Made by a program: the position numbers and the translations under genes. Of a DNA stretch of 64,000 nt, positions 43,223-56,522 are shown in pieces. The stretch's first letter is position 1. Each line of letters begins with the position of its first letter. Under the pieces are notes generated by a model that searched no databases, was not told the DNA's origin, and saw nothing but the letters and a program-made list of their open reading frames with translations. The stretch spans positions 372,001 through 436,000 of IMG/VR virus record IMGVR_UViG_3300027749_002876. One strand, written 5' to 3'.

Positions 43223-43924
43223 TTAATATTTAGAACTTAAATATTCAAATCTATTAGCTATTTCATCATAATTAAGAATGAGGCTTTTTAAATCCTTATG
43301 TTGGTCAGTAGTAGTTACCTTATAATTAAAACCTAACTCTATCTGTCCTAAAATTAATTGGTCAAAATCTATTATTGTCCCTCGCCCAATTGATATTAGA
43401 TAATCTTGTGTTTTCTCTGTATTTTTTAAATCAAAGAAAAATCGGTCAAATTGTGACAAACTAATTGACATTTTTTGTGAGTCAAATTCCTCATTATAAT
43501 TTTTAAATTGATAGGTAAGAATTCTACTTAAAAGTTGTTCTAGTTTGTTTTTTCTCCTAGTACATAAAAAATGTCGATCATTCAATAAATCAAATAAAAT
43601 AACTGACATTTCTATCGGATATCCATGCATGGTTACGGTTGAGTTAAGTTTATTATCATATGATTTAAATTTTAATATTCTATCCTCTAATAAAATGCGA
43701 TGTTTAAATAGTTCCTCCCAAGAATTTTCATATATTTTATTAAATATTTCTATTTGATTGTTAGGAGGAAGTCTTTTTGCTATTAAGTCATCAGTAATAT
43801 AACTTGCAAAAGTATCAAAAAACTCTCCAAAATTGTAATATCCTTGCTGTTCTAATATATTGGCAAGAAGCTTGGTTCCTGACCTAGGAAATCCAAAAAT
43901 AACAAAACTTGTATTAGTCAACAT
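43223..43924 (-). CDS. Sulfotransferase-like P-loop protein
   Basis: GFPRSGTKLL 5'-PAPS-binding motif, RKNKLEQLLS; ATG 5 nt after TATAAATA. Confidence 0.7.
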   Translation of the reverse strand: MLTNTSFVIFGFPRSGTKLLANILEQQGYYNFGEFFDTFASYITDDLIAKRLPPNNQIEIFNKIYENSWEELFKHRILLEDRILKFKSYDNKLNSTVTMHGYPIEMSVILFDLLNDRHFLCTRRKNKLEQLLSRILTYQFKNYNEEFDSQKMSISLSQFDRFFFDLKNTEKTQDYLISIGRGTIIDFDQLILGQIELGFNYKVTTTDQHKDLKSLILNYDEIANRFEYLSSKY

Positions 43925-43994
43925 ACCCGTATTTATATAACTACATTGTGCAAAAATATTAAATTTATGATAAATACAGTTGAGGACAACTAAC

Positions 43995-44315
43995 ATGACT
44001 ACATATTATTTATTTGAAACACGACAGACTAAACCAGCTGACGCTATTTGGTGGCCTAACCAATACGTAGTTGAATCAGACATACGTTGGAACACACTGA
44101 ACAGTATCGTAACTTATTGTAAATACACATTAGAAGATGTAAATACCAAAAAGTTTGCATTGTATTTTAACACAGAGGAACAATATTTAACATATCGTAC
44201 CGCAATGGCTGCATTAAGTAGTACTCCAGGGAGAACTGCATATAACGCTGAACATAATATTGTCACAACTATCTTACATGACGGATTCGTAGAAGTAGAT
44301 CCTGCAACTCTTTAA
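43995..44315 (+). CDS. Hypothetical protein
   Basis: SD GAGGA with ATAAATA upstream. Confidence 0.6.
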   Translation: MTTYYLFETRQTKPADAIWWPNQYVVESDIRWNTLNSIVTYCKYTLEDVNTKKFALYFNTEEQYLTYRTAMAALSSTPGRTAYNAEHNIVTTILHDGFVEVDPATL

Positions 44316-44353
44316 TTAAAAACATACTTTGGGAAAACAACTACAAAAAACTG

Positions 44354-44382
44354 TTGACAATAATTTAAAATCCTGCTATAAT
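44354..44382 (+). promoter_or_regulatory. Sigma70 promoter upstream of the leader/attenuator
   Basis: TTGACA-17-TATAAT with TGn extension. Confidence 0.9.
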
Positions 44383-44417
44383 ACATATTAGTTGAAGAAC
44401 AGGACTAAATAAAAACT

Positions 44418-44555
44418 ATGATGAATAAACCTTGTAACATGCTGAAACATATCGGACAGTGGCTAACGTTAGCCAGTGCATCCTTTGTGCCAGCATATCC
44501 ATCAAGTATTCGTGGCTCAAATGATAACCAAGAGATAAGCCCGGGGACTAGGTAA
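44418..44555 (+). CDS. Putative attenuator leader peptide (45 aa, all 20 amino acids)
   Basis: MMNKPCNMLKHIGQWLTLASASFVPAYPSSIRGSNDNQEISPGTR*; 36 distinct codons; weak AGGA SD. Confidence 0.6.
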   Translation: MMNKPCNMLKHIGQWLTLASASFVPAYPSSIRGSNDNQEISPGTR

Positions 44556-44583
44556 CAAGTTAACATCATAACTACTTTTATCT

Positions 44584-44623
44584 AACCCCTGGGAACTAAG
44601 AAATCTCAGGGGTTTTTGCTTTT
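44584..44623 (+). terminator. Intrinsic terminator with competing antiterminator (44540-44555 pairs with 44578-44593)
   Basis: aacccctggga-loop-tctcaggggtt, 11-bp stem followed by tttgctttt. Confidence 0.85.
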
Positions 44624-44634
44624 ACAGAGAGGAT

Positions 44635-44663
44635 TTGACAATAAATGGATAAAGAGATACAAT
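44635..44663 (+). promoter_or_regulatory. Sigma70 promoter
   Basis: TTGACA-17-TACAAT. Confidence 0.7.
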
Positions 44664-44812
44664 ACAAAACTACTGAAACAAAGCGTGATTGGTTTAGCAA
44701 TCATGTTCTGACGAAGGAGCAAGTAGCACAGTTGATACAAAATAAGATCGACCGTGCTAAAGTCTATCAAGAGGCTGTTAAGAAAGTCAACCGACTAACT
44801 TATACTGATTGA
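44645..44812 (+). CDS. Small hypothetical protein (55 aa)
   Basis: MDKEIQYKTTETKRDWFSNHVLTKEQVAQLIQNKIDRAKVYQEAVKKVNRLTYTD; GAGGA upstream. Confidence 0.5.
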   Translation: MDKEIQYKTTETKRDWFSNHVLTKEQVAQLIQNKIDRAKVYQEAVKKVNRLTYTD

Positions 44813-44960
44813 TGACAGCGTGAATAGGCAACGAGAGCCGGAATACAGCGTTAAATGTATCGAATGGGCGGACAGTACACATGAAAGCATGGAGACAACA
44901 TGTTAGTAAGACTACTGGGTAGGGTATTAACCCTACCATGTCGTGTAGAGATACACGGCA
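44813..44960 (+). ncRNA. Unidentified multi-hairpin RNA
   Basis: GC-richer non-coding stretch; stems ggtaggg/ccctacc, tgtcgtgta-GAGA-tacacggca, agcatg/catgtt. Confidence 0.55.
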
Positions 44961-45046
44961 TTCTAAAATATACCTAGTGAAAAACAATATTAGCTGAAAA
45001 CGCTAGACCCATTAGATCAGGGAGTACTAGGTGTGTTTTAGAATGC
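44958..45046 (+). ncRNA. Stem-bracketed small RNA A
   Basis: gcattctaaaatatacctagt / actaggtgtgttttagaatgc closing stem with G-U pairs. Confidence 0.65.
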
Positions 45047-45121
45047 GACCGTAACTCAGATGGATAGAGTACTAGGCTACGAACTTAGGAGTCGGGAATT
45101 CGAATTTCTCCGGTCGCACCA
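45045..45121 (+). tRNA. tRNA-Arg(ACG)
   Basis: Cloverleaf, loop CT-ACG-AA, CCA end. Confidence 0.92.
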
Positions 45122-45127
45122 ATATAT

Positions 45128-45204
45128 GGAAGCATAACTCAGTTGGCTAGAGTAACGGACTTTTAATCCGTGAGTCGAGGGTTCGAATCCCTCTGCTTCC
45201 ACCA
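45128..45204 (+). tRNA. tRNA-Lys(TTT)
   Basis: acgga-CT-TTT-AA-tccgt, GTTCGAATC, CCA. Confidence 0.95.
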
Positions 45205-45217
45205 GTATAAATACTGC

Positions 45218-45403
45218 ATGATAATTCAAACCATATCAGCAGTAAACGATATTACCAATCATCAATATCGCACAACAGTTTATAAAACATTAGAAGATCC
45301 TGCAACTAATAAGCAATACTTAGAGGTTGTACAGTATCTATACGATAAAGTAGGTAAATTAGAGCCTACACATTATAATAATCAAATAGATAAAAAAGCC
45401 TAA
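45218..45403 (+). CDS. Small hypothetical protein
   Basis: ATG 4 nt after TATAAATA, fills the tRNA spacer. Confidence 0.6.
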   Translation: MIIQTISAVNDITNHQYRTTVYKTLEDPATNKQYLEVVQYLYDKVGKLEPTHYNNQIDKKA

Positions 45404-45493
45404 GGAAACGTGGCAGAGTCCGGCCTATTGCAACAGTCTTGAAAACTGTCGATCCGAAAGGGTCCGTGAGTTCGAATCTCACCGTTTCTACCA
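45404..45493 (+). tRNA. tRNA-Ser(TGA)
   Basis: acagt-CT-TGA-AA-actgt, long variable arm, CCA. Confidence 0.95.
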
Positions 45494-45494
45494 T

Positions 45495-45571
45495 GGTGCT
45501 TGTCGTCAAGCGGTTAAGACCTCGGATTGTGATTCCGATATACGTGGGTTCGAATCCCATCAAGCACCCCA
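45495..45571 (+). tRNA. tRNA-His(GTG)
   Basis: tcgga-TT-GTG-AT-tccga, G-1/C73. Confidence 0.95.
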
Positions 45572-45572
45572 A

Positions 45573-45647
45573 GGATGTATAGCACAGCGGTAGTGCAATT
45601 CCTTCATACGGAATAGGTCAGTAGTTCAAATCTACTTACATCCACCA
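45573..45647 (+). tRNA. tRNA(CAT), elongator Met or Ile2
   Basis: attcc-TT-CAT-AC-ggaat, CCA. Confidence 0.88.
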
Positions 45648-45651
45648 TTAC

Positions 45652-45728
45652 AGCCTCATAGCTCAGTTGGTTAGAGCAATGTGTTGATAACGCATAGGTC
45701 CTCTGTTCGAGTCAGAGTGAGGCTACCA
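45652..45728 (+). tRNA. tRNA-Ile(GAT)
   Basis: atgtg-TT-GAT-AA-cgcat, CCA. Confidence 0.93.
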
Positions 45729-45733
45729 TTTAT

Positions 45734-45808
45734 ACCCCCTTCGCCAAGCGGTAAGGCCTCGGATTTTGATTCCGACATTCGGTGGTTCGAATCCATCAGG
45801 GGGTGCCA
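45734..45808 (+). tRNA. tRNA-Gln(TTG)
   Basis: tcgga-TT-TTG-AT-tccga, CCA. Confidence 0.95.
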
Positions 45809-45822
45809 GTGATAAATATAGA

Positions 45823-46377
45823 ATGATTTATTATAAACCATTAGAAATAGATTATTTTGCTACCATTATAAATAAATGTTTAGCATACGTAAAAACAGTC
45901 GATAGAGCCTATACTAGATCGTTGGCAAATACTAATTGGTATTATCTTGATTTAGAAATGTTAATGAAGGTATGCCCCGAACTTCAATTGGCATTTCAAA
46001 AACATGACTTAAAAATTATAATGGCAGCAGTCTATGTAATGTATTTACCTAAACACAGTAGACCTCATATTGACGCTTACCCTTCACACGCCAGAGTAAA
46101 TTTACCATTACTAAATTGTCAAGACACATATACTAATTTTTATACTAGTGACACTGAATCTCCAAGATATGTTAATCCAGATGGTGGTGGGAGATTCTGT
46201 TTCATGGCTGATAAGTATGAAAATCTAGTATTAGTTGATAGAGTAGAAATAAAACAAGCGACGGTGTTAAGAACAAAAGTATTGCATAGTGTGTATTTAC
46301 CCATAGATAATCCTGTGCCTAGAATTACACTATCATTAGCTTTTGACAAAGACCCTATTTATTTACTTGAAAATTAA
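45823..46377 (+). CDS. 2OG-Fe(II) oxygenase-like protein
   Basis: PHID...RVNLP...LHSV...RITLS; ATG 4 nt after ATAAATA. Confidence 0.6.
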   Translation: MIYYKPLEIDYFATIINKCLAYVKTVDRAYTRSLANTNWYYLDLEMLMKVCPELQLAFQKHDLKIIMAAVYVMYLPKHSRPHIDAYPSHARVNLPLLNCQDTYTNFYTSDTESPRYVNPDGGGRFCFMADKYENLVLVDRVEIKQATVLRTKVLHSVYLPIDNPVPRITLSLAFDKDPIYLLEN

Positions 46378-46385
46378 CTGTTTAT

Positions 46386-46535
46386 GGGATAGACGATAGG
46401 TTTAAGTCCCTGTCAATCTAATCACAGTGGGGTTAACTGTGATGACACTATAGTATGATTGACGGGTAGTATAAACTTGCCTATACGAGACAATCTAATG
46501 AGGCTTATTAACAATAAGATAGTTAGGCTCCCACC
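46386..46535 (+). ncRNA. Unidentified structured RNA
   Basis: cctgtcaatc/gattgacggg, atcacagt/actgtgat, cttatt/aataag; GGGA...TCCCACC ends. Confidence 0.6.
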
Positions 46536-46541
46536 TTTATT

Positions 46542-46616
46542 GGGTCCTTAGTTCAATGGATAGAATACGATGCTTCGAACTTCGGGATGTGGGTTCAATT
46601 CCTGCAGGACCCGCCA
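46542..46616 (+). tRNA. tRNA-Arg(TCG)
   Basis: Loop CT-TCG-AA, acceptor gggtcct/aggaccc, CCA. Confidence 0.9.
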
Positions 46617-46664
46617 ACAAGTGATTAAATACAATTAGTGATAATAACAGAAAAGGAGTACTAC

Positions 46665-47225
46665 ATGGCTGTTCTAGCACTAGATATCTCGGGAGTTCCC
46701 CGGCAATGGATATCAAATGATGACGCAATTACCTATAAAGCAAAAGATGCCATTGCATGGTCAATGGGGAACATTGTGGCTAGATATCGAGGTGGCACAC
46801 AAAATGACGGCACATTAAGTTACTTAGAAGCTAGTAGCATTATTGCCATCAAAGGTCATGGATTCAATCCATATAAACACTCATGTGTAGCACTAACTAA
46901 TAAAACATTGTTCGGTCGTGATAGACATGTATGTGCTTATTGCGGTGAACAGTTTCCCAATTATCATCTATTAAGTCGTGACCACATTGTCCCTAGAAGT
47001 AAGGGTGGTGAAAACACTTGGATGAACGTGGTTACCAGTTGTAAAACTTGTAACAGTAAAAAAGGACATAAGAGTTTAAAAGAAGTACGTATGGAATTAT
47101 TATACGCACCTTATGTCCCAAATCACTACGAAAATATGATACTACAACATAGAACTATACTTGCTGACCAAATGGAATATTTGTTAGCAGGTGTTCCAAA
47201 ACATAGTAGAATATTATTAAGTTAG
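46665..47225 (+). CDS. HNH endonuclease (McrA-like)
   Basis: RDRHVCAYCG...DHIVPRSKGG..TWMNVVTSCKTCNSKKG; SD AAGGAG. Confidence 0.9.
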   Translation: MAVLALDISGVPRQWISNDDAITYKAKDAIAWSMGNIVARYRGGTQNDGTLSYLEASSIIAIKGHGFNPYKHSCVALTNKTLFGRDRHVCAYCGEQFPNYHLLSRDHIVPRSKGGENTWMNVVTSCKTCNSKKGHKSLKEVRMELLYAPYVPNHYENMILQHRTILADQMEYLLAGVPKHSRILLS

Positions 47226-47254
47226 TGTACAATATTATTAAATAAAATACATAT

Positions 47255-47330
47255 TCCTTGATAGCTCAGTCGGTAGAGCAAAGCACTGTTAATGCTTGGG
47301 TCACACGTTCGAACCGTGTTCAAGGAGCCA
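47255..47330 (+). tRNA. tRNA-Asn(GTT)
   Basis: aagca-CT-GTT-AA-tgctt, CCA. Confidence 0.95.
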
Positions 47331-47337
47331 AATTTCC

Positions 47338-47411
47338 GCCCTACTAGTACAATGGTAGTACACTGGTTTTGTAATCCTGTGATGGCAGTTCAATTCTGTC
47401 GTGGGGCACCA
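47338..47411 (+). tRNA. tRNA-Thr(TGT)
   Basis: Loop TT-TGT-AA; anticodon stem contains mismatches; CCA. Confidence 0.8.
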
Positions 47412-47468
47412 AATAAATGCTGTTTTTAGAGTTGAGGACTAAATACTAGTATACAAGAAAGTTCAACT

Positions 47469-48068
47469 ATGAAAATGAGCAAATCACAAGCAGGTAAATT
47501 AGGCGCAGAAGTTTCTGCACTAATTACAGCAAAAAAAAAGCAAGCAAATATAGAAGCATATCTGTCTAACCCAAAAAAATGTGGGCATTGTAATGCACTC
47601 ATTAATTATGAGGGTAGATATAAAAAATTTTGTAATTCATCTTGCTCTGCATCACATAATAATACAAAAAGATTAATTGTTTCAACTAATAGTTGTCCTC
47701 AATGTAGTAAGCTAATTGGAAAAAATAGTAAATATTGTTCGGTTCGTTGTCAGCAAGATTTTCAATCAGCAGAAACTATTAGAAAATGGATTGCAAGGGA
47801 AACAATAACGGGATTATCTGCTGTTCGCCGGCATATCAAAGAACAACAGGATAGTAAATGTGCTGAATGCGGTATCGCTGAGTGGAATGGAAAAAATATA
47901 ACATTAGAGCTTGAGCATAGAGACGGAAACAGTGATAATAATACTCCTGAAAATTTATGTTTATTATGCCCAAATTGTCATAGCCAAACCCCAACATACA
48001 AAGCAAAAAATAAAGGTAAGGGTAGACATTCGCGCCGAGAGCGATACAAAAACGGTCAAAGTTATTGA
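47469..48068 (+). mobile_element. HNH homing endonuclease within the tRNA array
   Basis: Zinc ribbons plus CAECG...LELEHRDGN..NN...NL.LLCPNCHSQT. Confidence 0.9.
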
Positions 48069-48079
48069 CAACAAAGTAG

Positions 48080-48154
48080 CTGGCGTTAGTATAATGGATA
48101 ATACAATCGGCTTCTACCCGATGAATGTGGGTTCGATTCCTGCACGCCGGACCA
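48080..48154 (+). tRNA. tRNA-Arg(TCT) copy 1
   Basis: atcgg-CT-TCT-AC-ccgat, CCA. Confidence 0.93.
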
Positions 48155-48736
48155 TCATTGAATTAGAAGTTGCCAGTCACTATGACTATAATGGTAATCT
48201 TCTAATATTTCTAACATTCGTGAAAAAACTATTAAGGCTCTTTTATGATTTACCAGTTCAGTATGATGAATGTTTATTTTTTTCTCAACAAAAGATTTTA
48301 ATATATTATCACCCTCTTTTTTTAATTTGATTTTTTTTGCAACAATGTTCAATTTTGTTATTAGAGCGTTACAATCTACTATAGCAGTATTGGTTTGATT
48401 TTGTGCATGATGTATGTCAAACTTCATTTGTAAAATTAAATCGTCAAATTCTGGATTTATCTGTTGACTGTATTGTGATACCATATTTGAAAGTCTTGCA
48501 TAAACTTCAGCATCAAGATTGGTATCATCATAATGATCTCCGGTACTATCATAGTGTTCACGTTTAACAGGATCACTTAATGTTTCATATGCTAATTTGA
48601 TTCGTTTAAATTTTTCTATATCACCACCTTTATCGGGATGATGTGTTTGTGCTAGTATTCTATATTTTTGTTTGATATCATCGGGAGTACAATTTTTGGG
48701 TAATTCTAGTTCATCGTATAAGGTGTTGTTTTCCAT
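48155..48736 (-). CDS. DnaJ-domain (J-domain) protein
   Basis: LYDELEL...IKQKYRILA..HHPDKGGD...AYETLSDPVKR..YD. Confidence 0.92.
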   Translation of the reverse strand: MENNTLYDELELPKNCTPDDIKQKYRILAQTHHPDKGGDIEKFKRIKLAYETLSDPVKREHYDSTGDHYDDTNLDAEVYARLSNMVSQYSQQINPEFDDLILQMKFDIHHAQNQTNTAIVDCNALITKLNIVAKKIKLKKEGDNILKSFVEKKINIHHTELVNHKRALIVFSRMLEILEDYHYSHSDWQLLIQ

Positions 48737-48748
48737 ACGACTATTTAT

Positions 48749-48803
48749 CTGGGGTTAGCCTTCTAAGCAATCAATACAGGTTCTATTTTTGTACTATAGA
48801 CCA
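48749..48803 (+). pseudogene. Decayed tRNA-Arg(TCT) copy lacking the D-arm
   Basis: ctggggttag-[deletion]-ccttctaagcaatcaatacaggttc...gacca matches the tRNA at 50158-50232. Confidence 0.8.
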
Positions 48804-48807
48804 AAAT

Positions 48808-48836
48808 TTGACAATAAATTCAATCGGTACTATAAT
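48808..48836 (+). promoter_or_regulatory. Sigma70 promoter
   Basis: TTGACA-17-TATAAT. Confidence 0.85.
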
Positions 48837-48925
48837 ATATGTATAGATTGATTTAGCAGGTATGTTTATAATAAAACCCGCTGATTATTTGTATAAAAAA
48901 CACATCATTAAATACGGAGTTTTCC

Positions 48926-50104
48926 ATGAGAATTAATTCTATTGCTAGTACGATATTAGCAATCATACTTGTAGGATGCGGTGGCGGAGGTGGTCAACCA
49001 ACTACACCTATCATTGAAGCATATCCTCAAATTATAGATAACAATATAAAAAACAAGTTTGCTATTAAAAGTGTAAACATGGTTTTAAATAGTGATAGCC
49101 TGTTAGGACTACCCGGATGGACTAACATTGATGACCATATTAAAAACATTAAAGCATTGGGTGCTAATGATGTTAAAGTAACGATTAGTGCAGGGTATTA
49201 CGATACCCCATCTTCTAATAGTCCTAATTCAAATATTAACTTTAATCCAAGTGACAATGATTTGCTAACATTCTTTCGAAAGCTTAAAGCGGCAGGTTTA
49301 ACTATAACAGTTTACCCTTTTGTACATAAAAATACAAACGTTACCAATTTGTTAAGTACTGTTCATTCATCACCTTCTAATTTTGACGAATGGATATCTA
49401 ACCATACTAGTAGTATGTCAAGAATAGCAAATATAGCACAGCAAGGATCTGTGGATAGATTTGTAATTATAGGAGATGAGGTTCAACATCTAACGTATGA
49501 TGTTAAAAATCAAAATGGTTGGTTAAATCTCATTACAGAAATACGCAAGGTATATAAAGGACAATTAACCACTGTAATATATTCAAATGGAATGTACTAC
49601 AATGGAAAAAATCAGGTTGATATGGTTGGTGAGACTATATTAAGTAAATTGGATATTATTGGTGTAGGATGGTTTCCTAAATACTTAACTAATTCAAATA
49701 ATCCAACAGTTGCTGATTTGATTGCAGGTTGGAAAAATAATACAAATGGTGTAGACACTATTAAGTTTTTTGAATTAGTTAATCAAAAATATAAAAAACC
49801 AATTTGGATAGCTGATATGGCAATTCACAGTTTTGACGGAGACAATATTGATCCTGATAATATATACAACAACCTAATTAATTTAGTAACGGACGAACAG
49901 GAGCAAGCCGATGAATATGAAGCACTATTTACGGTATTGAGTTACAACATGGGCAATTGGTTTTTGGGAATGAGCATTGACAGTTATAACAATTTTCCTA
50001 GCAATTATACATTGCCAAGGCATTTAAATTCACCGTATAGTGAAGATATACGAGGTAAGATCGCTGAGGGTGTTGTCCGTAAATGGTATCGTCAGAAGAT
50101 GTAG
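48926..50104 (+). CDS. Lipoprotein with TIM-barrel glycoside hydrolase-like (GH113/GTA-like) domain
   Basis: Lipobox LVGC; IGDEV...IRKVYKGQLT...LDIIGV...KPIWIAD...DEQEQADEYEA. Confidence 0.65.
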   Translation: MRINSIASTILAIILVGCGGGGGQPTTPIIEAYPQIIDNNIKNKFAIKSVNMVLNSDSLLGLPGWTNIDDHIKNIKALGANDVKVTISAGYYDTPSSNSPNSNINFNPSDNDLLTFFRKLKAAGLTITVYPFVHKNTNVTNLLSTVHSSPSNFDEWISNHTSSMSRIANIAQQGSVDRFVIIGDEVQHLTYDVKNQNGWLNLITEIRKVYKGQLTTVIYSNGMYYNGKNQVDMVGETILSKLDIIGVGWFPKYLTNSNNPTVADLIAGWKNNTNGVDTIKFFELVNQKYKKPIWIADMAIHSFDGDNIDPDNIYNNLINLVTDEQEQADEYEALFTVLSYNMGNWFLGMSIDSYNNFPSNYTLPRHLNSPYSEDIRGKIAEGVVRKWYRQKM

Positions 50105-50107
50105 GGC

Positions 50108-50136
50108 TTGACACTAAATGAGTATTCTGCTATAAT
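50108..50136 (+). promoter_or_regulatory. Sigma70 promoter
   Basis: TTGACA-17-TATAAT with TGn. Confidence 0.85.
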
Positions 50137-50157
50137 ATAGACAAGCCAAAAATCTAT

Positions 50158-50232
50158 CTGGGGTTAGTATAATGGATAATACAGCTGCCTTCTAAGCAGT
50201 CAATACAGGTTCGATTCCTGTACCCCGGACCA
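50158..50232 (+). tRNA. tRNA-Arg(TCT) copy 2
   Basis: gctgc-CT-TCT-AA-gcagt, CCA. Confidence 0.95.
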
Positions 50233-50261
50233 AATGTTGTTTATTTACAACAACTAATAGT

Positions 50262-50372
50262 TTGACAATAAATCCAAATAGTGCTATACTCTATGTATAG
50301 ATTGATTGAACAAGTTCTTGGACACAGAGACACAAAAAAGAATTTGACAATAAATGGTGATTGTGATACAAT
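50262..50372 (+). promoter_or_regulatory. Tandem sigma70 promoters
   Basis: TTGACA-17-TATACT (50262-50290) and TTGACA-17-TACAAT (50344-50372). Confidence 0.8.
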
Positions 50373-50412
50373 CATAGCATGAGTTGAAAAAGTCATCGTA
50401 CTAATCAACAAA

Positions 50413-50424
50413 GTTCTTTAAAAA
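50413..50424 (+). promoter_or_regulatory. boxA-like Nus antitermination site
   Basis: GTTCTTTAAAAA fits GYTCTTTAANA, about 35 nt into the leader of a stable-RNA transcript. Confidence 0.65.
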
Positions 50425-50460
50425 GTTAAGTTATCATATAGCCCTGTACAAGTTACAGGG

Positions 50461-50695
50461 ACTATATGTAAACATATTAAGGGTTACCTGATCCGTTAGG
50501 ATGTACGAAGGTTATAAGGGTATCGACGGATACACGCCGAGACATACATCAGGAAGCGTATGATAACGAAAGTTATGAACGTGACGGGCAGTTAGGCAGT
50601 AATGACGAAGTTCAGAGTTCCCGGTGTACAAGCCGGGGTACAGGAGACGGTCCTGGACAGACGAATGTAGTTCCCATAATGTGTTTTCATATAGT
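50461..50695 (+). ncRNA. Stem-bracketed ornate RNA B (about 195-nt core)
   Basis: Closing stem actatatgtaaacatatta/taatgtgttttcatatagt; internal atccgtt/gacggat, catac/gtatg, ataac-GAAA-gttat, cccgg/ccggg, cagga/tcctg. Confidence 0.75.
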
Positions 50696-50825
50696 GTGTT
50701 ATTAGTTTTGCTGATGTAAGCCATGGGGGAAACGTCAACCCTGAGTAACTATGTATATAAACGGTAGTGTGGCCACCAATTCCGTTGAGACATAGCAAAC
50801 AGTGCGTCAGCAAAACTAATAATAT
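50696..50825 (+). ncRNA. Stem-bracketed RNA C
   Basis: ttattagttttgctgatg/cgtcagcaaaactaataa closing stem; internal ctatgt/acatag, aacgg/ccgtt. Confidence 0.7.
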
Positions 50826-50828
50826 TTG

Positions 50829-50904
50829 GCTCGGTTCATCTAGCGGCCTAGGATAGTGCCCTTTCACGGCATTCACACGGGTTCGAATCCCGTACCGAGC
50901 TCCA
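50829..50904 (+). tRNA. tRNA-Glu(TTC)
   Basis: gtgcc-CT-TTC-AC-ggcat, CCA. Confidence 0.95.
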
Positions 50905-51104
50905 GTATCCCGTTACTATTTTCGTTAAAATAGCGTTTGATTAGCGACAGAGATCCGGTGGCAGAAAACCGTTAGCGTGAGGATTAAAAATACCCTCGCA
51001 GGCTCTGATAGGCAGAATCTCAACTGCACACAGACTTTGAATAAATGAGATGGACAGAGTAACCGCTCAATTAAGGGCTGGCGTGGAAACAAGTAGCTTA
51101 TACT
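50905..51104 (+). ncRNA. Unidentified multi-stem RNA between tRNA-Glu and tRNA-Tyr
   Basis: ctatttt/aaaatag, cggt/accg, gcg..gagg/cctcgc, atctca/tgagat stems; no credible ORF. Confidence 0.6.
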
Positions 51105-51110
51105 AATTTT

Positions 51111-51195
51111 GGAGATGAAGCATCAATGGTGATGCAGTGGATTGTAAATCCGCCGCCTTATGGCACGACTGGTTCAATCCCAGTAATCTCCACCA
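51111..51195 (+). tRNA. tRNA-Tyr(GTA)
   Basis: gtgga-TT-GTA-AA-tccgc, long variable arm, CCA. Confidence 0.93.
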
Positions 51196-51200
51196 ATATT

Positions 51201-51275
51201 GGTCTCAAAGTGTTCACGGACGCATACATGCCTGTCACGCATGAGGAGCGGGATCGTTACCCGCTGGGACCGCCA
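51201..51275 (+). tRNA. tRNA-Asp(GTC)
   Basis: catgc-CT-GTC-AC-gcatg; atypical T-loop ATCGTTA. Confidence 0.88.
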
Positions 51276-51281
51276 AAATAT

Positions 51282-51310
51282 TTGACAACAAAAACTATTT
51301 GATATATAAT
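51282..51310 (+). promoter_or_regulatory. Sigma70 promoter
   Basis: TTGACA-17-TATAAT. Confidence 0.85.
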
Positions 51311-51327
51311 ACAGATTGTTTATAAAT

Positions 51328-51412
51328 GCGGGCATGGGGAAATTGGTTAGACCCAATAGACTTAAAATCTATCGCCTTGTGCATCCCGGTTCGAGTCCGG
51401 GTGCCCGCACCA
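51328..51412 (+). tRNA. tRNA-Leu(TAA)
   Basis: ataga-CT-TAA-AA-tctat, long variable arm. Confidence 0.95.
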
Positions 51413-51421
51413 AAGAATGAT

Positions 51422-51498
51422 GCCCCTTTAATTAAATCAGGTTATAATGCCGGCCTCATAAGCCGTTTTTCTGGGTTCAAATCCCAGCGGGGGTACCA
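51422..51498 (+). tRNA. tRNA(CAT), probably Ile2 (lysidine) or Met
   Basis: cggc-CT-CAT-AA-gccg, GCCCC acceptor, CCA. Confidence 0.8.
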
Positions 51499-51506
51499 TG
51501 TATTTA

Positions 51507-51595
51507 GGAGAGTTGGGTGAGTGGTTAAACCAGCAGATTGCTAATCTGTCACTGTGAATAACGGTGCGTGGGTTCGAATCCCACACTCTCCGCCA
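51507..51595 (+). tRNA. tRNA-Ser(GCT)
   Basis: gcaga-TT-GCT-AA-tctgt, long variable arm. Confidence 0.95.
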
Positions 51596-52157
51596 AACTT
51601 TTTAGTAATTCTTCAATGCTAATATTTAAGAATGATAACCCGAAAATAATTCGTGTGGTTTTGATATTTTCCACACTGTGAAAGTTTCTGCTATTCATTA
51701 GATACCAAGTACCAGTATTAAAAAAATATTCTTGTTGTGCAGATACCTCTTTATATGTAAGTACATTTCCTCCTACAGTATCACTTGCTAAATCTTCTTT
51801 ATCATAAAAGATAGTGCTAACATTATCTCCACCTAACTCAATATAAAAATTTATACTTGCTGTTCGCACTCTATCAGAGTGTGGTGGATATGATGCAAAT
51901 TCTATAGGATTTATATTATGTATAACACCAATTGTTGCATATAGTTTATGCTTAAACAATGGCTGGAATTCTTGTGTAGCTATGAGATTAATACTGTCGT
52001 TAGAAAAAAAATCACCAGCGGCACAGTTAATATCAGGACCTTGTATTGAACTGTGCCAATTTCTAGAACTAACATTTATTGGTCGATCTAGAGCGACTGA
52101 TTTAACTAAGTTAATTAAGTTATCAGATGGTTTAGGTAATTGCAAAGTATAAATCAT
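51549..52157 (-). CDS. 2OG-Fe(II) oxygenase-like protein; 3' end overlaps tRNA-Ser on the opposite strand
   Basis: PPHSD..TASINFY...FHSVEN...RIIFG; minus-strand TATAAATA upstream. Confidence 0.6.
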   Translation of the reverse strand: MIYTLQLPKPSDNLINLVKSVALDRPINVSSRNWHSSIQGPDINCAAGDFFSNDSINLIATQEFQPLFKHKLYATIGVIHNINPIEFASYPPHSDRVRTASINFYIELGGDNVSTIFYDKEDLASDTVGGNVLTYKEVSAQQEYFFNTGTWYLMNSRNFHSVENIKTTRIIFGLSFLNISIEELLKSLAESVGFEPTHRYSQ

Positions 52158-52196
52158 TTAATACAGTCTTATGTTTAAGACTGTATTTATACCGAA

Positions 52197-52386
52197 CGTT
52201 CCGGGTGTCTTCGGATAGTGTGACCCACACGATGAGAAGTACAGTGACATGTACGGGTGGTAGTCTTTAAACCTAAAGGCCGCTAGCAATGCGAGAACGG
52301 TCCCTGTCGGGAAGCGGGTGGAAGGAGTGTGTGATGGGTATGATAGCGTCATATCTTGATACTCTATAATTACCGCCGGGGGATGC
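52197..52386 (+). ncRNA. Unidentified GC-rich multi-stem RNA
   Basis: tccggg/cttcgga, ccac/gtgg around gtaca/tgtac, gtcttta/taaaggc, gggtatgat/gtcatatct, ggagtgt/atactct. Confidence 0.7.
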
Positions 52387-52387
52387 A

Positions 52388-52477
52388 GAGCATATTGAAA
52401 TACATTAAAGATAGGGTCGTATCGGTTCATTGAACCTTAGTACATACCAAGGTAGTTAGTGTGTTTCAATATGCTTT
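52388..52477 (+). ncRNA. Stem-bracketed small RNA D
   Basis: agcatattgaaatacattaa/ttagtgtgtttcaatatgct with G-U pairs. Confidence 0.65.
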
Positions 52478-52480
52478 TAT

Positions 52481-52556
52481 GTAGGTGTGTACCGAATGGT
52501 TAGGTAGCGGATTGCAAATCCGTGCTATGCAGGTTCGATCCCTGTCACCTACTCCA
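52481..52556 (+). tRNA. tRNA-Cys(GCA)
   Basis: gcgga-TT-GCA-AA-tccgt, U73, CCA. Confidence 0.95.
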
Positions 52557-52564
52557 GAATATAT

Positions 52565-52638
52565 GCGGGGTTGGCATATTGGTTGTGTCCTAGCCTTCCA
52601 AGCTAGTCAAAGGAGTTCGATTCTCCTACCCCGCTCCA
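52565..52638 (+). tRNA. tRNA-Gly(TCC)
   Basis: ctagc-CT-TCC-AA-gctag, U73, CCA. Confidence 0.95.
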
Positions 52639-52641
52639 AAA

Positions 52642-53202
52642 TTATCGTATAATAAGGTTAGAAAAAAGTTTAACGATATCATCCCATGCTATACGTCTGT
52701 CATTAGTTCGAAGGCTGTAACATTTTCTTGGTCCAATTCCAATTGCTCGGTGTATTGTAGAAGCATTTACTAAGTATGCCTTATTGTTGTTTGTATCATA
52801 CTGTTTGCTAGGAGTAAGTATAGGTTTGTATTTTGTAACTACTCCCCAGTTATCTTTATTTAAAGCCCCACCAGTAATTCCATCTACTTCAACCTCATCA
52901 TGGTCATAAAATTCTAGTACACCTGTACCACCGTCTATCCAATTAATGCCAAACATAAAATCTTCAGGAACTATTGCATCTGAATGCAATGCTCCTTTGA
53001 AATCTGTTTTTTTAAAATAACTTAGTTTACACCAATTTAAACCCAAAAGATTAATATATTCTGGTTTAAAAATATGATCGATTCTATCTAGTCTCATATA
53101 ATTAAATGGTAAATGGTCATCATCAAATCCCTTAAAGGAAGGCAATGTTACCTCACTGAATGCCGGTAAGTTTAACTCATATAGTTGTTCGGATGTAATC
53201 AT
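52642..53202 (-). CDS. 2OG-Fe(II) oxygenase-like protein
   Basis: LHSD...FGINW...IHRA...RKCYSLR. Confidence 0.55.
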   Translation of the reverse strand: MITSEQLYELNLPAFSEVTLPSFKGFDDDHLPFNYMRLDRIDHIFKPEYINLLGLNWCKLSYFKKTDFKGALHSDAIVPEDFMFGINWIDGGTGVLEFYDHDEVEVDGITGGALNKDNWGVVTKYKPILTPSKQYDTNNNKAYLVNASTIHRAIGIGPRKCYSLRTNDRRIAWDDIVKLFSNLIIR

Positions 53203-53230
53203 ATATATATTTAGTTGTTGACCAATAGTA

Positions 53231-53259
53231 TTGACAGATAAATAGTTTTTTGTTATAAT
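53231..53259 (+). promoter_or_regulatory. Sigma70 promoter
   Basis: TTGACA-17-TATAAT with TGn. Confidence 0.85.
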
Positions 53260-53267
53260 AGTAAAAT

Positions 53268-53344
53268 GCCCTGGTGGTGAAATTGGTAGACACAGCGGTC
53301 TTAGAAGCCGTAAGCTGAGAGTTCGAGTCTCTCCTAGGGCACCA
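53268..53344 (+). tRNA. tRNA-Leu(TAG) with short variable region
   Basis: gcggt-CT-TAG-AA-gccgt, only 5 nt before the T-stem. Confidence 0.88.
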
Positions 53345-53420
53345 AACTAAAACATATTAAACAGATGGATACAAGCTGTAGGTATACAGTGGTAACAGAA
53401 TGGTTAGTATGTTTTAGTTT
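53345..53420 (+). ncRNA. Stem-bracketed small RNA E
   Basis: aactaaaacatattaa/ttagtatgttttagtt fills the Leu-Ala spacer. Confidence 0.6.
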
Positions 53421-53494
53421 GGGGGATTGATGTAATGGGAGCCTGGGACCTTTGCAAGGTCTTCGTAACAGTTCGATTCTGTTATCCTCCACCA
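53421..53494 (+). tRNA. tRNA-Ala(TGC)
   Basis: ggacc-TT-TGC-AA-ggtct, G3-U70. Confidence 0.93.
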
Positions 53495-53500
53495 AGATAG

Positions 53501-53575
53501 CGCGGGGTAGAGAAGTAGTAACTCATCAGGCTCATAACCTGAAGATCGGCGGTGCGAATCCGTCCCCCGCATCCA
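53501..53575 (+). tRNA. Initiator tRNA-fMet(CAT)
   Basis: CGCGGGG 5' end with C1:A72 mismatch; tcagg-CT-CAT-AA-cctga. Confidence 0.9.
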
Positions 53576-53579
53576 GTTA

Positions 53580-53656
53580 CGGAGTGTAGCGCAGTCTGGT
53601 AGCGCACCTGGTTTGGGACCAGGGGGTCCAAAGTTCGAATCTTTGTACTCCGACCA
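53580..53656 (+). tRNA. tRNA-Pro(TGG)
   Basis: cctgg-TT-TGG-GA-ccagg, CCA. Confidence 0.95.
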
Positions 53657-53678
53657 TAGTTTTTTAAAAGGAAATGTT

Positions 53679-53846
53679 ATGACATGTAGAGGATATGATT
53701 CACGGGCAGTTAAACTTCCCAAAGCAGTTAAACGTGCGGCAACACTTATTCGTGATGCACATGTACGTGGAGCTTTTATTCGTAGTTTTGTAGAGATTGA
53801 AAAAAGCAATTCACGTACAAGTTCTCGTAAGGATAATAGCAAATGA
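53679..53846 (+). CDS. Small basic hypothetical protein
   Basis: SD AAGGA; 55 aa. Confidence 0.6.
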   Translation: MTCRGYDSRAVKLPKAVKRAATLIRDAHVRGAFIRSFVEIEKSNSRTSSRKDNSK

Positions 53847-54022
53847 CTAAAGGTAGCTTGCCAAGACCATACAGTGTTGATTTAAATACATTTGACAACA
53901 ACTGGAACAATATTTTTCGCAAGCCTGATCCAAGAACTATTGAGGATCAACAGAATGAAGATGAAGCGTTTGAAAAAATTGCTAATCAAACAGAAGTTAA
54001 AGATAGTAACCAAGGTGGTTAA
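53843..54022 (+). CDS. Small phage protein (59 aa)
   Basis: MTKGSLPRP...FDNNWNNIF; ATGA coupling; not in the ORF track. Confidence 0.65.
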   Translation: MTKGSLPRPYSVDLNTFDNNWNNIFRKPDPRTIEDQQNEDEAFEKIANQTEVKDSNQGG

Positions 54023-54027
54023 ATATC

Positions 54028-54103
54028 GGGTCGTTAGCTCAGTTGGTAGAGCGTCTGCCTTACACGCAGAATGTCGGGAGTTCGAGTCTCTCACGACCCA
54101 CCA
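54028..54103 (+). tRNA. tRNA-Val(TAC)
   Basis: tctgc-CT-TAC-AC-gcaga, CCA. Confidence 0.96.
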
Positions 54104-54118
54104 AACAAAGGAGTAATT

Positions 54119-54259
54119 ATGAGCAAAAGTGAAGATGTAATCAACAGAGCATACGGTCACATTGTGAAAGAAGTTAATCCTACAATTAGTTTTGATATAC
54201 TTGTATTTCGTGGTTTCAAATACTATTGGTACAAGTTGATTAGAAAAGTAACAAGATAA
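54119..54259 (+). CDS. Small hypothetical protein
   Basis: SD AAGGAG; 46 aa. Confidence 0.55.
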   Translation: MSKSEDVINRAYGHIVKEVNPTISFDILVFRGFKYYWYKLIRKVTR

Positions 54260-54284
54260 CCAAGTTTAACAATAGAAAGATGAT

Positions 54285-54506
54285 ATGACTGAAAGCAGAG
54301 CAAGATATACAAGTGAAGAAGCCGCACTCATGGTCGGTAGTCGATTTGATTTAGTTCTTATTGCCTCACAACGTGTAAGAGAATTAAAGCGTGGGCATAA
54401 ATCATTGCTCAATACAAAAGCAGGACCCACTGTAACTGCATTAATGGAAATTGAAGCTGGACTAGTTGGACGAGAATATCTCAAACGTATTAGAAAAAAT
54501 TTATAA
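54285..54506 (+). CDS. rpoZ: RNA polymerase omega subunit homologue
   Basis: ARYTSEEA...GSRFDLVLIASQRVREL...PTVTALMEIEAGLV aligns with RpoZ GNRFDLVLVAARRARQ...TVIALREIEEGLI. Confidence 0.88.
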   Translation: MTESRARYTSEEAALMVGSRFDLVLIASQRVRELKRGHKSLLNTKAGPTVTALMEIEAGLVGREYLKRIRKNL

Positions 54507-54511
54507 ACAAT

Positions 54512-54585
54512 GTCTCTCTAGTATAATGGCAGTACTGCGGTCTCCAAAACCGTTAGTGGGGGTTCGAGTCCCTCGGGGGATGCCA
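54512..54585 (+). tRNA. tRNA-Trp(CCA)
   Basis: gcggt-CT-CCA-AA-accgt, CCA. Confidence 0.93.
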
Positions 54586-54630
54586 AATAAGTAGTATAAT
54601 TGATATTTTTTAAAAAAAATATAGGTCCAC

Positions 54631-55275
54631 TTATTTTTTATTAATAGAAGAAACTTGTGCTGTTCTAATTATATGACCGACAGGATCAACGGATTTACAC
54701 TTATCTCCGTGCCATCTTTTAAGATTGCCATTTGATACTATAAATCCGCAATGTTGACATGTGTATTTAGGGGGCGACATTCCTTTGTTAGTTGTTTTGC
54801 CTTTTCGGTAAGCAGATAGTTTTGCTCTTTTTTGGTCTGATCCGATTTTGCCGGTATTTGATATAGCAATATTTTTTTTGTGTTCTTCTGATTTAGGACG
54901 ACCTTTTCCTGCTATGGACATTTTATTTCTTGTTTTTTCAGTTAATATATTAACCCTACGAAATATTTCTACGTTTGAATTCGGGTCATGATATTTGCCA
55001 TTTAATAACAACGGGTTCCCCCATTCTTGTTTAATTGTAATTTGTTCTTGTTGCCAGCACTTGACAGAATCTATATTTCTATATATAATCTCTATTATAA
55101 ATGCCTCTTTTCCGTACTGTTTTATATCTTTCTTTATACGAGTAGAAGATGTAAAATATATTATCCAAAGGTCATGTTCTGGAGTAATTCCAAGTGTTTG
55201 GTTTTTATAGCGGTACCCGTAGTAAAATTCGCTAGTAATTTTGTTAGTTATTTTGTAAACATAAGCGTCAATCAT
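54631..55275 (-). mobile_element. GIY-YIG/NUMOD3 (Seg-like) homing endonuclease
   Basis: YVYKITNK...YYGYR...YFTSS; KSEEHKKNI repeats; CQHCG...RWHGDKCK. Confidence 0.85.
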
Positions 55276-55317
55276 ATATTGTCCTTGTTTATCTATTTAT
55301 CATTTAGGAGATGTTTT

Positions 55318-55902
55318 ATGCCAAAAGTTTTTCTTTATTCTGACCCACATTTTGGGCACGCCGGCGTTTGTAAATTTACACGTAATGATGGTATTACAAA
55401 ATTAAGGCCATGGACTGATCCAGATGAAATGGATGAAGAATTAGTCCGACGATACAATGAAGTGGTAGGCCCCAAAGACAAGTGCTATTTTTTGGGAGAT
55501 GTAGTTATCAATCGCAAAGCATTATCTACCGTAGGCCGCTTAAATGGCGACAAAGTATTGATTCGTGGTAACCACGATATCTTCCGTGATGATGAGTATA
55601 GATTATACTTCCGTGAATTGCGCGCCTATCATGTTATGAATGGAATGATATTAAGTCATATACCTATTCATACTGAATCCTTAGGTCGTTTTGGAACTAA
55701 CATTCACGGTCACTTACACGCCAATCGTGTAATGATGGAACCTGTGGGCAAGTATGGCATTCCTATAATTGATGCTAGATATCATTGTGTATGCGTTGAG
55801 CATACAGATTACACACCTATACTGTTTGAAGATGTTATCAAACGTATTGAAAGTGAAGGTGGTAGTGTAGGTTTCAAAAACGGCAACGGACCTACAATGT
55901 AA
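55318..55902 (+). CDS. Calcineurin-like metallophosphoesterase
   Basis: SDPHFGH, LGDV, GNHD, SHIP, HGHLH; SD AGGAG. Confidence 0.92.
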   Translation: MPKVFLYSDPHFGHAGVCKFTRNDGITKLRPWTDPDEMDEELVRRYNEVVGPKDKCYFLGDVVINRKALSTVGRLNGDKVLIRGNHDIFRDDEYRLYFRELRAYHVMNGMILSHIPIHTESLGRFGTNIHGHLHANRVMMEPVGKYGIPIIDARYHCVCVEHTDYTPILFEDVIKRIESEGGSVGFKNGNGPTM

Positions 55903-55927
55903 AATAGGACCTTCGGGTCCTATTTTT
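55901..55927. terminator. Bidirectional intrinsic terminator
   Basis: aaaataggacc-TTCG-ggtcctatttt between convergent genes. Confidence 0.9.
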
Positions 55928-56522
55928 ATTTACAGCCTATAATCATATAACGATTATATCCATTTTCTTTATATTGTACATGTTTTTGTCCGGAATACAA
56001 TAATTTATTTAGATTAAACTTATTAATTAACTCATCTAAACTACTAGTGGTTTGTTTTATATACCAGGGAAATTTAGGATCCGATATATCGGTAGTTTGA
56101 ATACATACTAAACTATTATTAGGAACTGTATCATACCATTTATTACTATCCATCTGGTCTATACTACAGTTTATAAAAATAGAGTCATTACAATTACTAA
56201 AATCATAATCATTAACATCCTGTATATGATTATGTACATTTGGTTTCTCATACTGCCACATATCACATACACGATTAGCCGTAGTAATTGCTTCTGGATT
56301 TATATCATAACCGTATACCGTATTATAAAATTCAGGTTTGCGAGTAATTAACATAAATGCTAGTAAGTTATCCCAACATCCTAATACATGTAACGTAGGA
56401 TCTTTAACGAATTCGCTATACATTACAATTTCTAATTCCTCACATAACCATAACTTACTTTTTATTAAGCCATGATAAAAGGATTCATGTGTATCAAATT
56501 TATTTGAATTTGTCATTTTCAT
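55926..56522 (-). CDS. SAM-dependent methyltransferase-like protein
   Basis: KSKLWL...VLGCW...GYDINP...INCS. Confidence 0.6.
   Translation of the reverse strand: MKMTNSNKFDTHESFYHGLIKSKLWLCEELEIVMYSEFVKDPTLHVLGCWDNLLAFMLITRKPEFYNTVYGYDINPEAITTANRVCDMWQYEKPNVHNHIQDVNDYDFSNCNDSIFINCSIDQMDSNKWYDTVPNNSLVCIQTTDISDPKFPWYIKQTTSSLDELINKFNLNKLLYSGQKHVQYKENGYNRYMIIGCK

Follow-up and report, generated by a model that had tools for sequence, protein, structure and literature searches.

Our results are consistent with a ribosome-mediated transcription attenuator at the 5' edge of a phage tRNA array, in which a 45-residue leader peptide containing all 20 amino acids ends inside an RNA element formed by two competing helices. 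We identified the same unit in over 100 uncultured-phage contigs, which yielded 76 distinct leader peptides with a median pairwise identity of 32%, of which 70 contain all 20 amino acids and the other six contain 19. These findings fit a sensor that lets more transcription through when any charged tRNA runs short, an interpretation that rests on sequence comparison alone and that we consider likely.

The unit was found in a 64,000-nucleotide stretch of DNA (hereafter, the window), which is part of a large uncultured phage, with virion proteins and ribonucleotide reductase encoded upstream and a tRNA array interspersed with HNH endonuclease genes downstream. No DNA relative was found among 50,697 deposited phage genomes: INPHARED phages showed no DNA match to positions 44300-44900, and only tRNA matches to 40000-64000. 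The elements of the locus, all on the + strand, are as follows:

44354-44382 (+), P1, a consensus sigma-70 promoter with an extended -10
44401-44417 (+), conserved translation-initiation region (AGGACTAAATA, a short spacer, then the ATG)
44418-44555 (+), leader ORF of 45 sense codons
44540-44555 (+), antiterminator 5' arm, the last 16 nt of the ORF including the stop codon
44558-44573 (+), small inner hairpin enclosed by the antiterminator, weakly supported
44578-44593 (+), antiterminator 3' arm, overlapping the terminator 5' arm
44585-44623 (+), intrinsic terminator with a 10-bp stem, a 9-nt loop and a T tract
44635-44663 (+), P2, a second promoter directly after the terminator
44645-44812 (+), conserved 55-aa protein of unknown function
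44817-44975 (+), conserved structured RNA of unknown kind, between the small ORF and the first tRNA
45045-54585 (+), array of 26 tRNA genes, interspersed with HNH endonuclease genes and internal promoters

A first-pass annotation made from the sequence alone had described the promoter, the ORF, the terminator, the alternative pairing and the array, and each of these elements was confirmed at its position. P1 comprises TTGACA at 44354-44359, a 17-nt spacer and TATAAT at 44377-44382, with a TG at 44374-44375, and scores 12/12; the leader ORF starts 35 nt after its -10 hexamer. The Shine-Dalgarno sequence is weak, as had been cautioned, and poorly spaced: AGGA lies 13 nt upstream of the ATG, a long spacing for which we have no explanation, whereas the initiation region itself is conserved in all leaders found independently through the 55-aa ORF. 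The ORF uses 36 distinct codons and covers all 24 decoding boxes. Whether 36 distinct codons would be unremarkable had been put forward in advance as a possible refutation; drawing 45 codons from the 15,179 codons of the window's long ORFs gave a mean of 26.5 distinct codons (sd 2.3), with P(>=36) = 4.5e-5 and P(20 residue types) = 0.002, and the GC3 of the leader is 0.42 against 0.22 for those ORFs. The terminator stem, which is G+C-rich, pairs 44585-44594 with 44604-44613, and is followed by a T run from 44613. The pairing of 44540-44555 with 44578-44593 consists of 7+7 base pairs, including two G-U, split by a 2x2 internal loop; it is part of the minimum-free-energy folds of both the full transcript and the 3' segment, while the centroid fold shows the terminator instead, and the two structures therefore compete. 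ARAGORN identified 25 tRNAs from 45045 to 54585, and Rfam added a 26th at 51111-51192. P2 scores 11/12.

In order to find relatives, the 55-aa ORF was first used as a query, recovering 31 loci from IMG/VR contigs of up to 524 kb, and in all but two of these (our loci L016 and L018) the leader lies directly upstream. A pattern built on the conserved translation-initiation region then recovered at least 120 more stretches. Together these gave 115 leader-sized ORFs next to the motif, one of which (in locus L092) was unrelated and set aside, and 76 distinct leader peptides of 40-59 residues, forming 8 clusters at 50% identity and 27 clusters at 70%. Amino-acid composition was never used in the selection of these loci. 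In contrast, searches elsewhere gave little: tblastn with a short and a long leader returned only chance hits, among which that in Escherichia phage BF17 lies inside a 375-aa gene, and no cultured phage with the element was found; Pfam and PHROGs contain no family for the leader; and a pattern scan of genome contigs gave 120 mostly chance matches, of which one is a true leader on a 13-kb contig binned with a Neisseriaceae MAG, which is only a weak hint of the host. Limnohabitans phage DC31, which has the best tRNA match, carries a 5-tRNA array with a promoter but no comparable leader. The leader peptide has a single hit among 5.8 billion predicted proteins, against 211 clusters for the neighbouring 55-aa ORF, showing that gene callers miss the key ORF.

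The position of the unit is conserved. In every instance with enough flanking sequence (about 95), no tRNA lies within 3 kb upstream, and a same-strand tRNA array begins 260-1540 nt downstream, so that the unit marks the 5' boundary of the array. Array completeness in relatives was mostly not assessed, since the retrieved loci cut the arrays short; in the window's array no tRNA-Phe was found, although Phe is in the leader, and it is apparently absent from locus L142 as well, which we do not explain. A promoter scoring at least 10/12 lies upstream of the leader in 80 of 81 distinct relatives.

The conserved object is the ORF, whose presence in homologues was one of the points on which the proposal had been said to depend. 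The frame stays open in the 76 distinct variants through codon-sized indels, while the two other + frames carry about 4.3 stops each. A gene on the opposite strand was considered and rejected, as an antisense open stretch at least as long as the leader exists in 63% of members, and it holds 20 residue types in only 20%. The observed fraction of complete peptides, 92%, was compared with several nulls: the family's pooled composition gives 3.6% complete, uniform composition 14%, and shuffling of residues within alignment columns 20% (sd 4, max 34%), whereas only 2.1% of 3,356 other ORFs of 38-62 codons in the same DNA are complete. Shuffles within clusters of at least 50%, 60% and 70% identity give 49%, 53% and 75%, respectively, and 0 of 2000 within-cluster shuffles reach the observed value; completeness is therefore not just an inherited set of conserved columns. 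Further, changes are coordinated: Cys sits at position 5-6 in most peptides but at 9, 15, 21 or 36 in lineages that lost it there, Trp moves to 25, 27, 33 or 43, and His to 6, 7, 8, 13, 15 or 19, with Cys and Trp nearly always present exactly once. There are no runs of codons for any amino acid, each appearing once or a few times, so sensitivity to mild starvation would be low. Constraint on individual residues is otherwise weak, with a pN/pS of about 0.6-0.8 in a noisy estimate. An S-I-R-G block, the most conserved of the peptide, is not explained by a composition-only model, and neither is the nearly invariant nucleotide stretch that encodes it; these may represent a programmed ribosome pause or a polymerase pause. 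We also examined whether AGGACTAAATA is a general ribosome-binding motif in this phage, but it has two exact occurrences in the window (three allowing one mismatch), which is chance level.

Diversity extends to the codon level. Given each peptide, the number of distinct codons exceeds that predicted from the codon usage of long ORFs in the fetched leader loci (mean z = +1.9, 99% of values positive), and leader GC3 is 0.39 against 0.28 for those ORFs. In the 81 coding sequences, both Leu boxes (UUR and CUN) are used in 75 (51 expected), both Ser boxes (UCN and AGY) in 81 (71 expected), both Arg boxes (CGN and AGR) in 70 (51 expected), and AUA plus AUY Ile codons in 68 (46.5 expected). The initial claim that the leader samples every tRNA box holds for the window, but in the family it is a strong tendency and not a rule, as 47 of the 81 coding sequences cover all 24 boxes and 31 cover 23.

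Covariation of both alternative stems had likewise been proposed as a test, and it was observed in a plain MAFFT alignment of 75 distinct 3' segments. The terminator is 99.1% paired, with compensatory changes at 4 of 10 pairs. The outer antiterminator helix is 86% paired, with compensatory changes at 6 of 14 pairs, two of which show three Watson-Crick pair types (AU/UA/GC and GC/CG/AU); 0 of 500 shuffles reach the observed covariation, and sliding the register collapses the pairing. The small inner hairpin is only 61% paired across the family in this alignment. Independently of any alignment, each nascent RNA was folded up to the point just before the terminator 3' arm, and in 75 of 75 cases at least 6 nt of the terminator 5' arm pair with the ORF arm, with a mean dG of -22.9 kcal/mol, against -10.1 with the arm shuffled and -16.2 for the terminator hairpin alone. 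RNAalifold on 38 full leaders predicts only the terminator, with no conserved structure in the ORF body, no conserved third (1:2) helix and no conserved pause hairpin to synchronise the ribosome with polymerase; as a weak or lineage-specific 1:2 helix is not excluded, this result does not settle whether one exists. The design thus appears to be a two-state one that reads through by default, in which a free arm gives read-through and a masked arm gives termination, and this differs from the trp geometry invoked in the first-pass annotation. The stop codon lies 29 nt before the terminator stem, so a terminating ribosome does not block the terminator.

Peptide and switch are also linked. The antiterminator arm forms the last 16 nt of the ORF in the short forms and lies 7-13 codons before the stop in the long forms, that is, where a ribosome finishing the leader would mask it. 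In 74 of 75 variants the set of residue types is complete 1-5 codons before the codon where the arm begins, and the long forms continue for 7-13 codons beyond that start without adding a new type, whereas permutation of residue order expects this in 33% of cases. However, the last residue type, usually Glu, sits within a ribosome footprint of the arm, a placement that we do not explain: allowing about 9 nt of footprint beyond the A site, only 18 of 75 variants keep all 20 types at positions that leave the arm fully free, and most keep 19, with Glu or Gln lost.

Regarding what is gated, the leader modulates tRNA transcription and does not solely control it. P2 (TTGACA-17-TAnAAT) is conserved in about three quarters of relatives, scoring 11/12 in 57 of 82 distinct ones, and it persists where the small ORF has decayed to 5-6 codons, so it is a real promoter; the window's array holds seven further consensus promoters, which together with P2 mean that the tRNAs are transcribed regardless. 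About 19 of 82 relatives lack P2, and in those P1 and the leader are the only promoter found directly upstream of the first tRNAs. A link between weak T tracts and absence of P2 was judged by eye, but the pattern was not clean and it was dropped. The product that depends wholly on read-through is the 55-aa protein, because its ATG lies inside the P2 spacer and the P2 -10 hexamer covers its codons 5-7, so that transcripts from P2 begin about 25 nt inside the ORF and only P1 read-through transcripts can encode it, in agreement with the earlier remark that P2 would miss its start. This protein forms 211 database clusters, all named 'hypothetical', and has no significant Pfam match. The structured RNA that follows, of about 160 nt, is present in most relatives, and 16 of its 23 predicted pairs show compensatory changes; its function, as that of the 55-aa protein, is unexplained. 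Rfam searches at E <= 1 on 43500-56000 and at E <= 10 on 44380-45050 found nothing for the leader or the downstream RNA, the best scores in the latter being PK-repBA at 18.6 bits (threshold 45) and His_leader at 14.7 bits (threshold 49).

The observation made in the first-pass annotation is thus real, and its interpretation of a leader gating read-through into the tRNA array is supported by comparative data, with the corrections given above. In the mechanism that we favour, with good though not full confidence, P1 fires and the leader is translated while RNA polymerase moves on. A ribosome running smoothly to the 3' end of the ORF would cover the antiterminator 5' arm, the terminator hairpin would form, and transcription would stop near 44617-44623. 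If the ribosome were absent, late, or stalled at an upstream codon because the matching aminoacyl-tRNA is scarce, owing possibly to starvation, a mismatch with the host's tRNA pool, or tRNA-cleaving host defences, the free arm would pair with the terminator 5' arm, and polymerase would read through into the 55-aa ORF, the structured RNA and the tRNA genes, adding to basal transcription from P2. Once phage tRNAs restored decoding, termination would resume, closing a feedback loop on tRNA supply. Sequence comparison establishes the ORF, the completeness of its residue set, the two competing helices and the position before tRNA arrays; by contrast, translation of the leader, its coupling to polymerase, the stalling signals and the feedback are inferred, there being no transcript, ribosome-profiling or reporter data, and the dependence of read-through on leader translation and aminoacyl-tRNA supply was not measured here.

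The closest precedent is the whiB7 5' leader of mycobacteria, where a promoter-proximal uORF is followed by an intrinsic terminator with a competing antiterminator, efficient uORF translation gives termination, stalling gives read-through, and the mixed composition of the uORF dictates which starvations are sensed, a single Trp codon being sufficient; the M. smegmatis uORF lacks only Cys (PMC10274678). The leader studied here is likewise of mixed, in fact complete, composition, although the functional meaning of this is taken from whiB7. Conversely, whiB7 uORFs are Ala-rich (25-40%, against 6.5% here), their completeness varies by species whereas here completeness itself is conserved, their output is a transcription factor in Actinobacteria rather than a phage tRNA array plus a 55-aa protein, and there is no sequence similarity. 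The attenuators of amino-acid operons (trp, his, leu, thr, ilv, pheA) and of pheST also have a short leader ORF, terminator and antiterminator alternatives, and a ribosome whose position decides between them, and pheST shows that a translation-apparatus gene can be controlled in this way. Those leaders carry runs of one or a few regulatory codons and a 1:2 pause/anti-antiterminator helix, while here there are no runs, every residue type is present, and no conserved third helix was found; loss of leader translation should therefore give read-through rather than super-attenuation. T-box riboswitches link the supply of charged tRNA to read-through of an intrinsic terminator upstream of translation-apparatus genes, as the present element would, but they bind one specific uncharged tRNA directly and need no translation; no T-box (RF00230) hit was obtained in either Rfam search, and an ORF is the conserved feature here. 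In antibiotic-responsive leader ORFs (erm, vmlR, bmrCD type) a stalled ribosome frees an antiterminator, so that a translation problem turns on a remedy, a logic also cited for whiB7 (PMC10274678); those leaders respond to drug-bound ribosomes at particular peptide motifs and control resistance genes, and no such motif or gene is present here.

Other explanations were considered. The one that survives best, although unlikely, is a general translation-capacity or infection-stage timer, reporting only whether ribosomes load and move at all, for example during host shut-off, ribosome shortage or translation inhibitors. The read-through default in the absence of a ribosome and the single occurrence of codons agree with it, and whiB7 also responds to ribosome-targeting drugs (PMC10274678); however, a pure capacity sensor needs no complete residue set, no single conserved Cys and Trp codons, and no coverage of both boxes.

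Two further readings are equally doubtful, and less likely than the former. In the first, P1, the ORF and the terminator would form an ordinary monocistronic unit encoding a small protein with its own function, and the helix between the ORF end and the terminator would only shape the mRNA 3' end. The S-I-R-G block and conserved T-C, K-H and W positions suggest a constraint at the peptide level, and the unit has its own promoter and terminator with a separate promoter following it, but this reading does not explain the selection for a complete residue set with relocating Cys, His and Trp, the excess codon-box diversity, a covarying helix mutually exclusive with the terminator and more stable than it, or the fixed position before tRNA arrays; moreover, the pN/pS is high for a folded functional protein, and there is no Pfam or PHROG match. 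In the second, S-I-R-G would stall the ribosome in response to a specific ligand or factor, as in the arrest-peptide leaders SecM, TnaC, SpeFL and Erm, whose motifs it resembles; that stall would set read-through, and the complete residue set would be secondary. Synonymous variation at its Arg and Gly codons points to selection on the amino acids, and the block lies 8-14 codons upstream of the arm, from where a stalled ribosome would leave the antiterminator free; nevertheless, the 40-42-aa subfamily has S-D-R-N instead and the leader of locus L083 has S-A-R-N, no ligand or partner is evident, and the completeness statistics are not accounted for. Least likely, a trans-acting small RNA, in which the roughly 230-nt terminated transcript would be the functional product and the ORF incidental, would agree with a transcript that folds better than shuffled versions (z = -2.9) and with released attenuator RNAs acting in trans in other bacteria (PMC6614838), but it is at odds with the lack of conserved structure in the ORF body, the conservation of reading frame and residue completeness through indels of whole codons, and the absence of an Rfam match.

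In its most far-reaching form, which we regard as about as likely as not, the virus would carry a closed-loop monitor of the whole decoding apparatus: one short ORF with roughly one codon for each amino acid and tRNA box would act as a test message, and failure to read any codon would open transcription into the phage's own near-complete tRNA set, into a 55-aa protein made only under that condition, and into an uncharacterised structured RNA. This would let the phage detect and repair tRNA loss caused by starvation, codon mismatch or tRNA-cleaving host defences.

Ribosome-mediated attenuation is an established mechanism, and full-text literature searches found no description of an element such as this one; what is new is that completeness itself is the conserved, selected trait, that the element is viral, and that its output is the tRNA supply. 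It would also give synthetic biology a compact, roughly 270-nt sensor for the supply of any aminoacyl-tRNA. How and when phages express their tRNA genes is largely unknown, although host immune systems are now known to target tRNAs and phage tRNAs can counter them (PMC12409363). This element would be the first regulatory device tied to a phage tRNA array, and the first attenuator whose leader is selected for completeness rather than for enrichment in one amino acid, turning the question of why a phage carries a full tRNA set into a testable feedback model.

Downstream of the leader terminator, the window comprises the following features:
44645-44812, the ORF encoding the 55-aa protein
44817-44975, a conserved structured RNA of unknown kind
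45045-54585, the array of 26 tRNA genes
46638-47225 and 47469-48068, HNH endonuclease genes lying between tRNAs
48808, 50108, 50262, 50344, 51282, 53231 and 55061 (+ strand), seven promoters in and just beyond the tRNA array

The family of the 55-aa protein forms 211 clusters, all of them named "hypothetical", and its start codon lies inside the spacer of the P2 promoter, so only read-through from the leader promoter can express it. The structured RNA, located between this ORF and the first tRNA, displays a hairpin with an AACGAG loop and an invariant GGGCGGACAG, and compensatory changes were found in 16 of 23 RNAalifold pairs in 17 diverse copies; it directly follows the leader terminator in those relatives that lack P2, and it has no match in Rfam. 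Together with the P1 and P2 promoters of the leader, the seven promoters listed add up to nine on the + strand between 44354 and 55089, each scoring 11-12 out of 12. No tRNA-Phe was detected in the 26-tRNA array of the window nor in the 26-tRNA array of the related locus L142, although both leaders contain a Phe codon.

Regarding the region upstream of the leader, the leader promoter and the start of its 5' UTR were found tandemly duplicated in loci L049, L050, L078, L103 and L116, and most relatives also carry a 5'-UTR hairpin, which is absent from the short 35-nt UTR of the window. The same initiation region, AGGACTAAATA...CTATGA, also precedes an unrelated 133-aa protein in IMG/VR locus L038 (12301-12715) and in about 20 other IMG/VR loci (L041, L046, L047 and others); this protein weakly matches a virion structural PHROG (phrog_14802, E = 1.5e-5).

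Two diverged copies of the unit constituted by the leader and the tRNA array, corresponding to loci L004 and L024/L126, are carried about 290 kb apart by one single IMG/VR contig (3300027749_002876, 524 kb), which is either a very large phage with two arrays or a chimeric assembly. Among the GTDB representative genomes, the only true leader was that of locus L241 (contig CANEUJ010000032.1), which is 13 kb long and binned into a Neisseriaceae MAG; the best tRNA match among isolates corresponded to a Limnohabitans phage. Taken together, these observations are a weak hint of a freshwater betaproteobacterial host.
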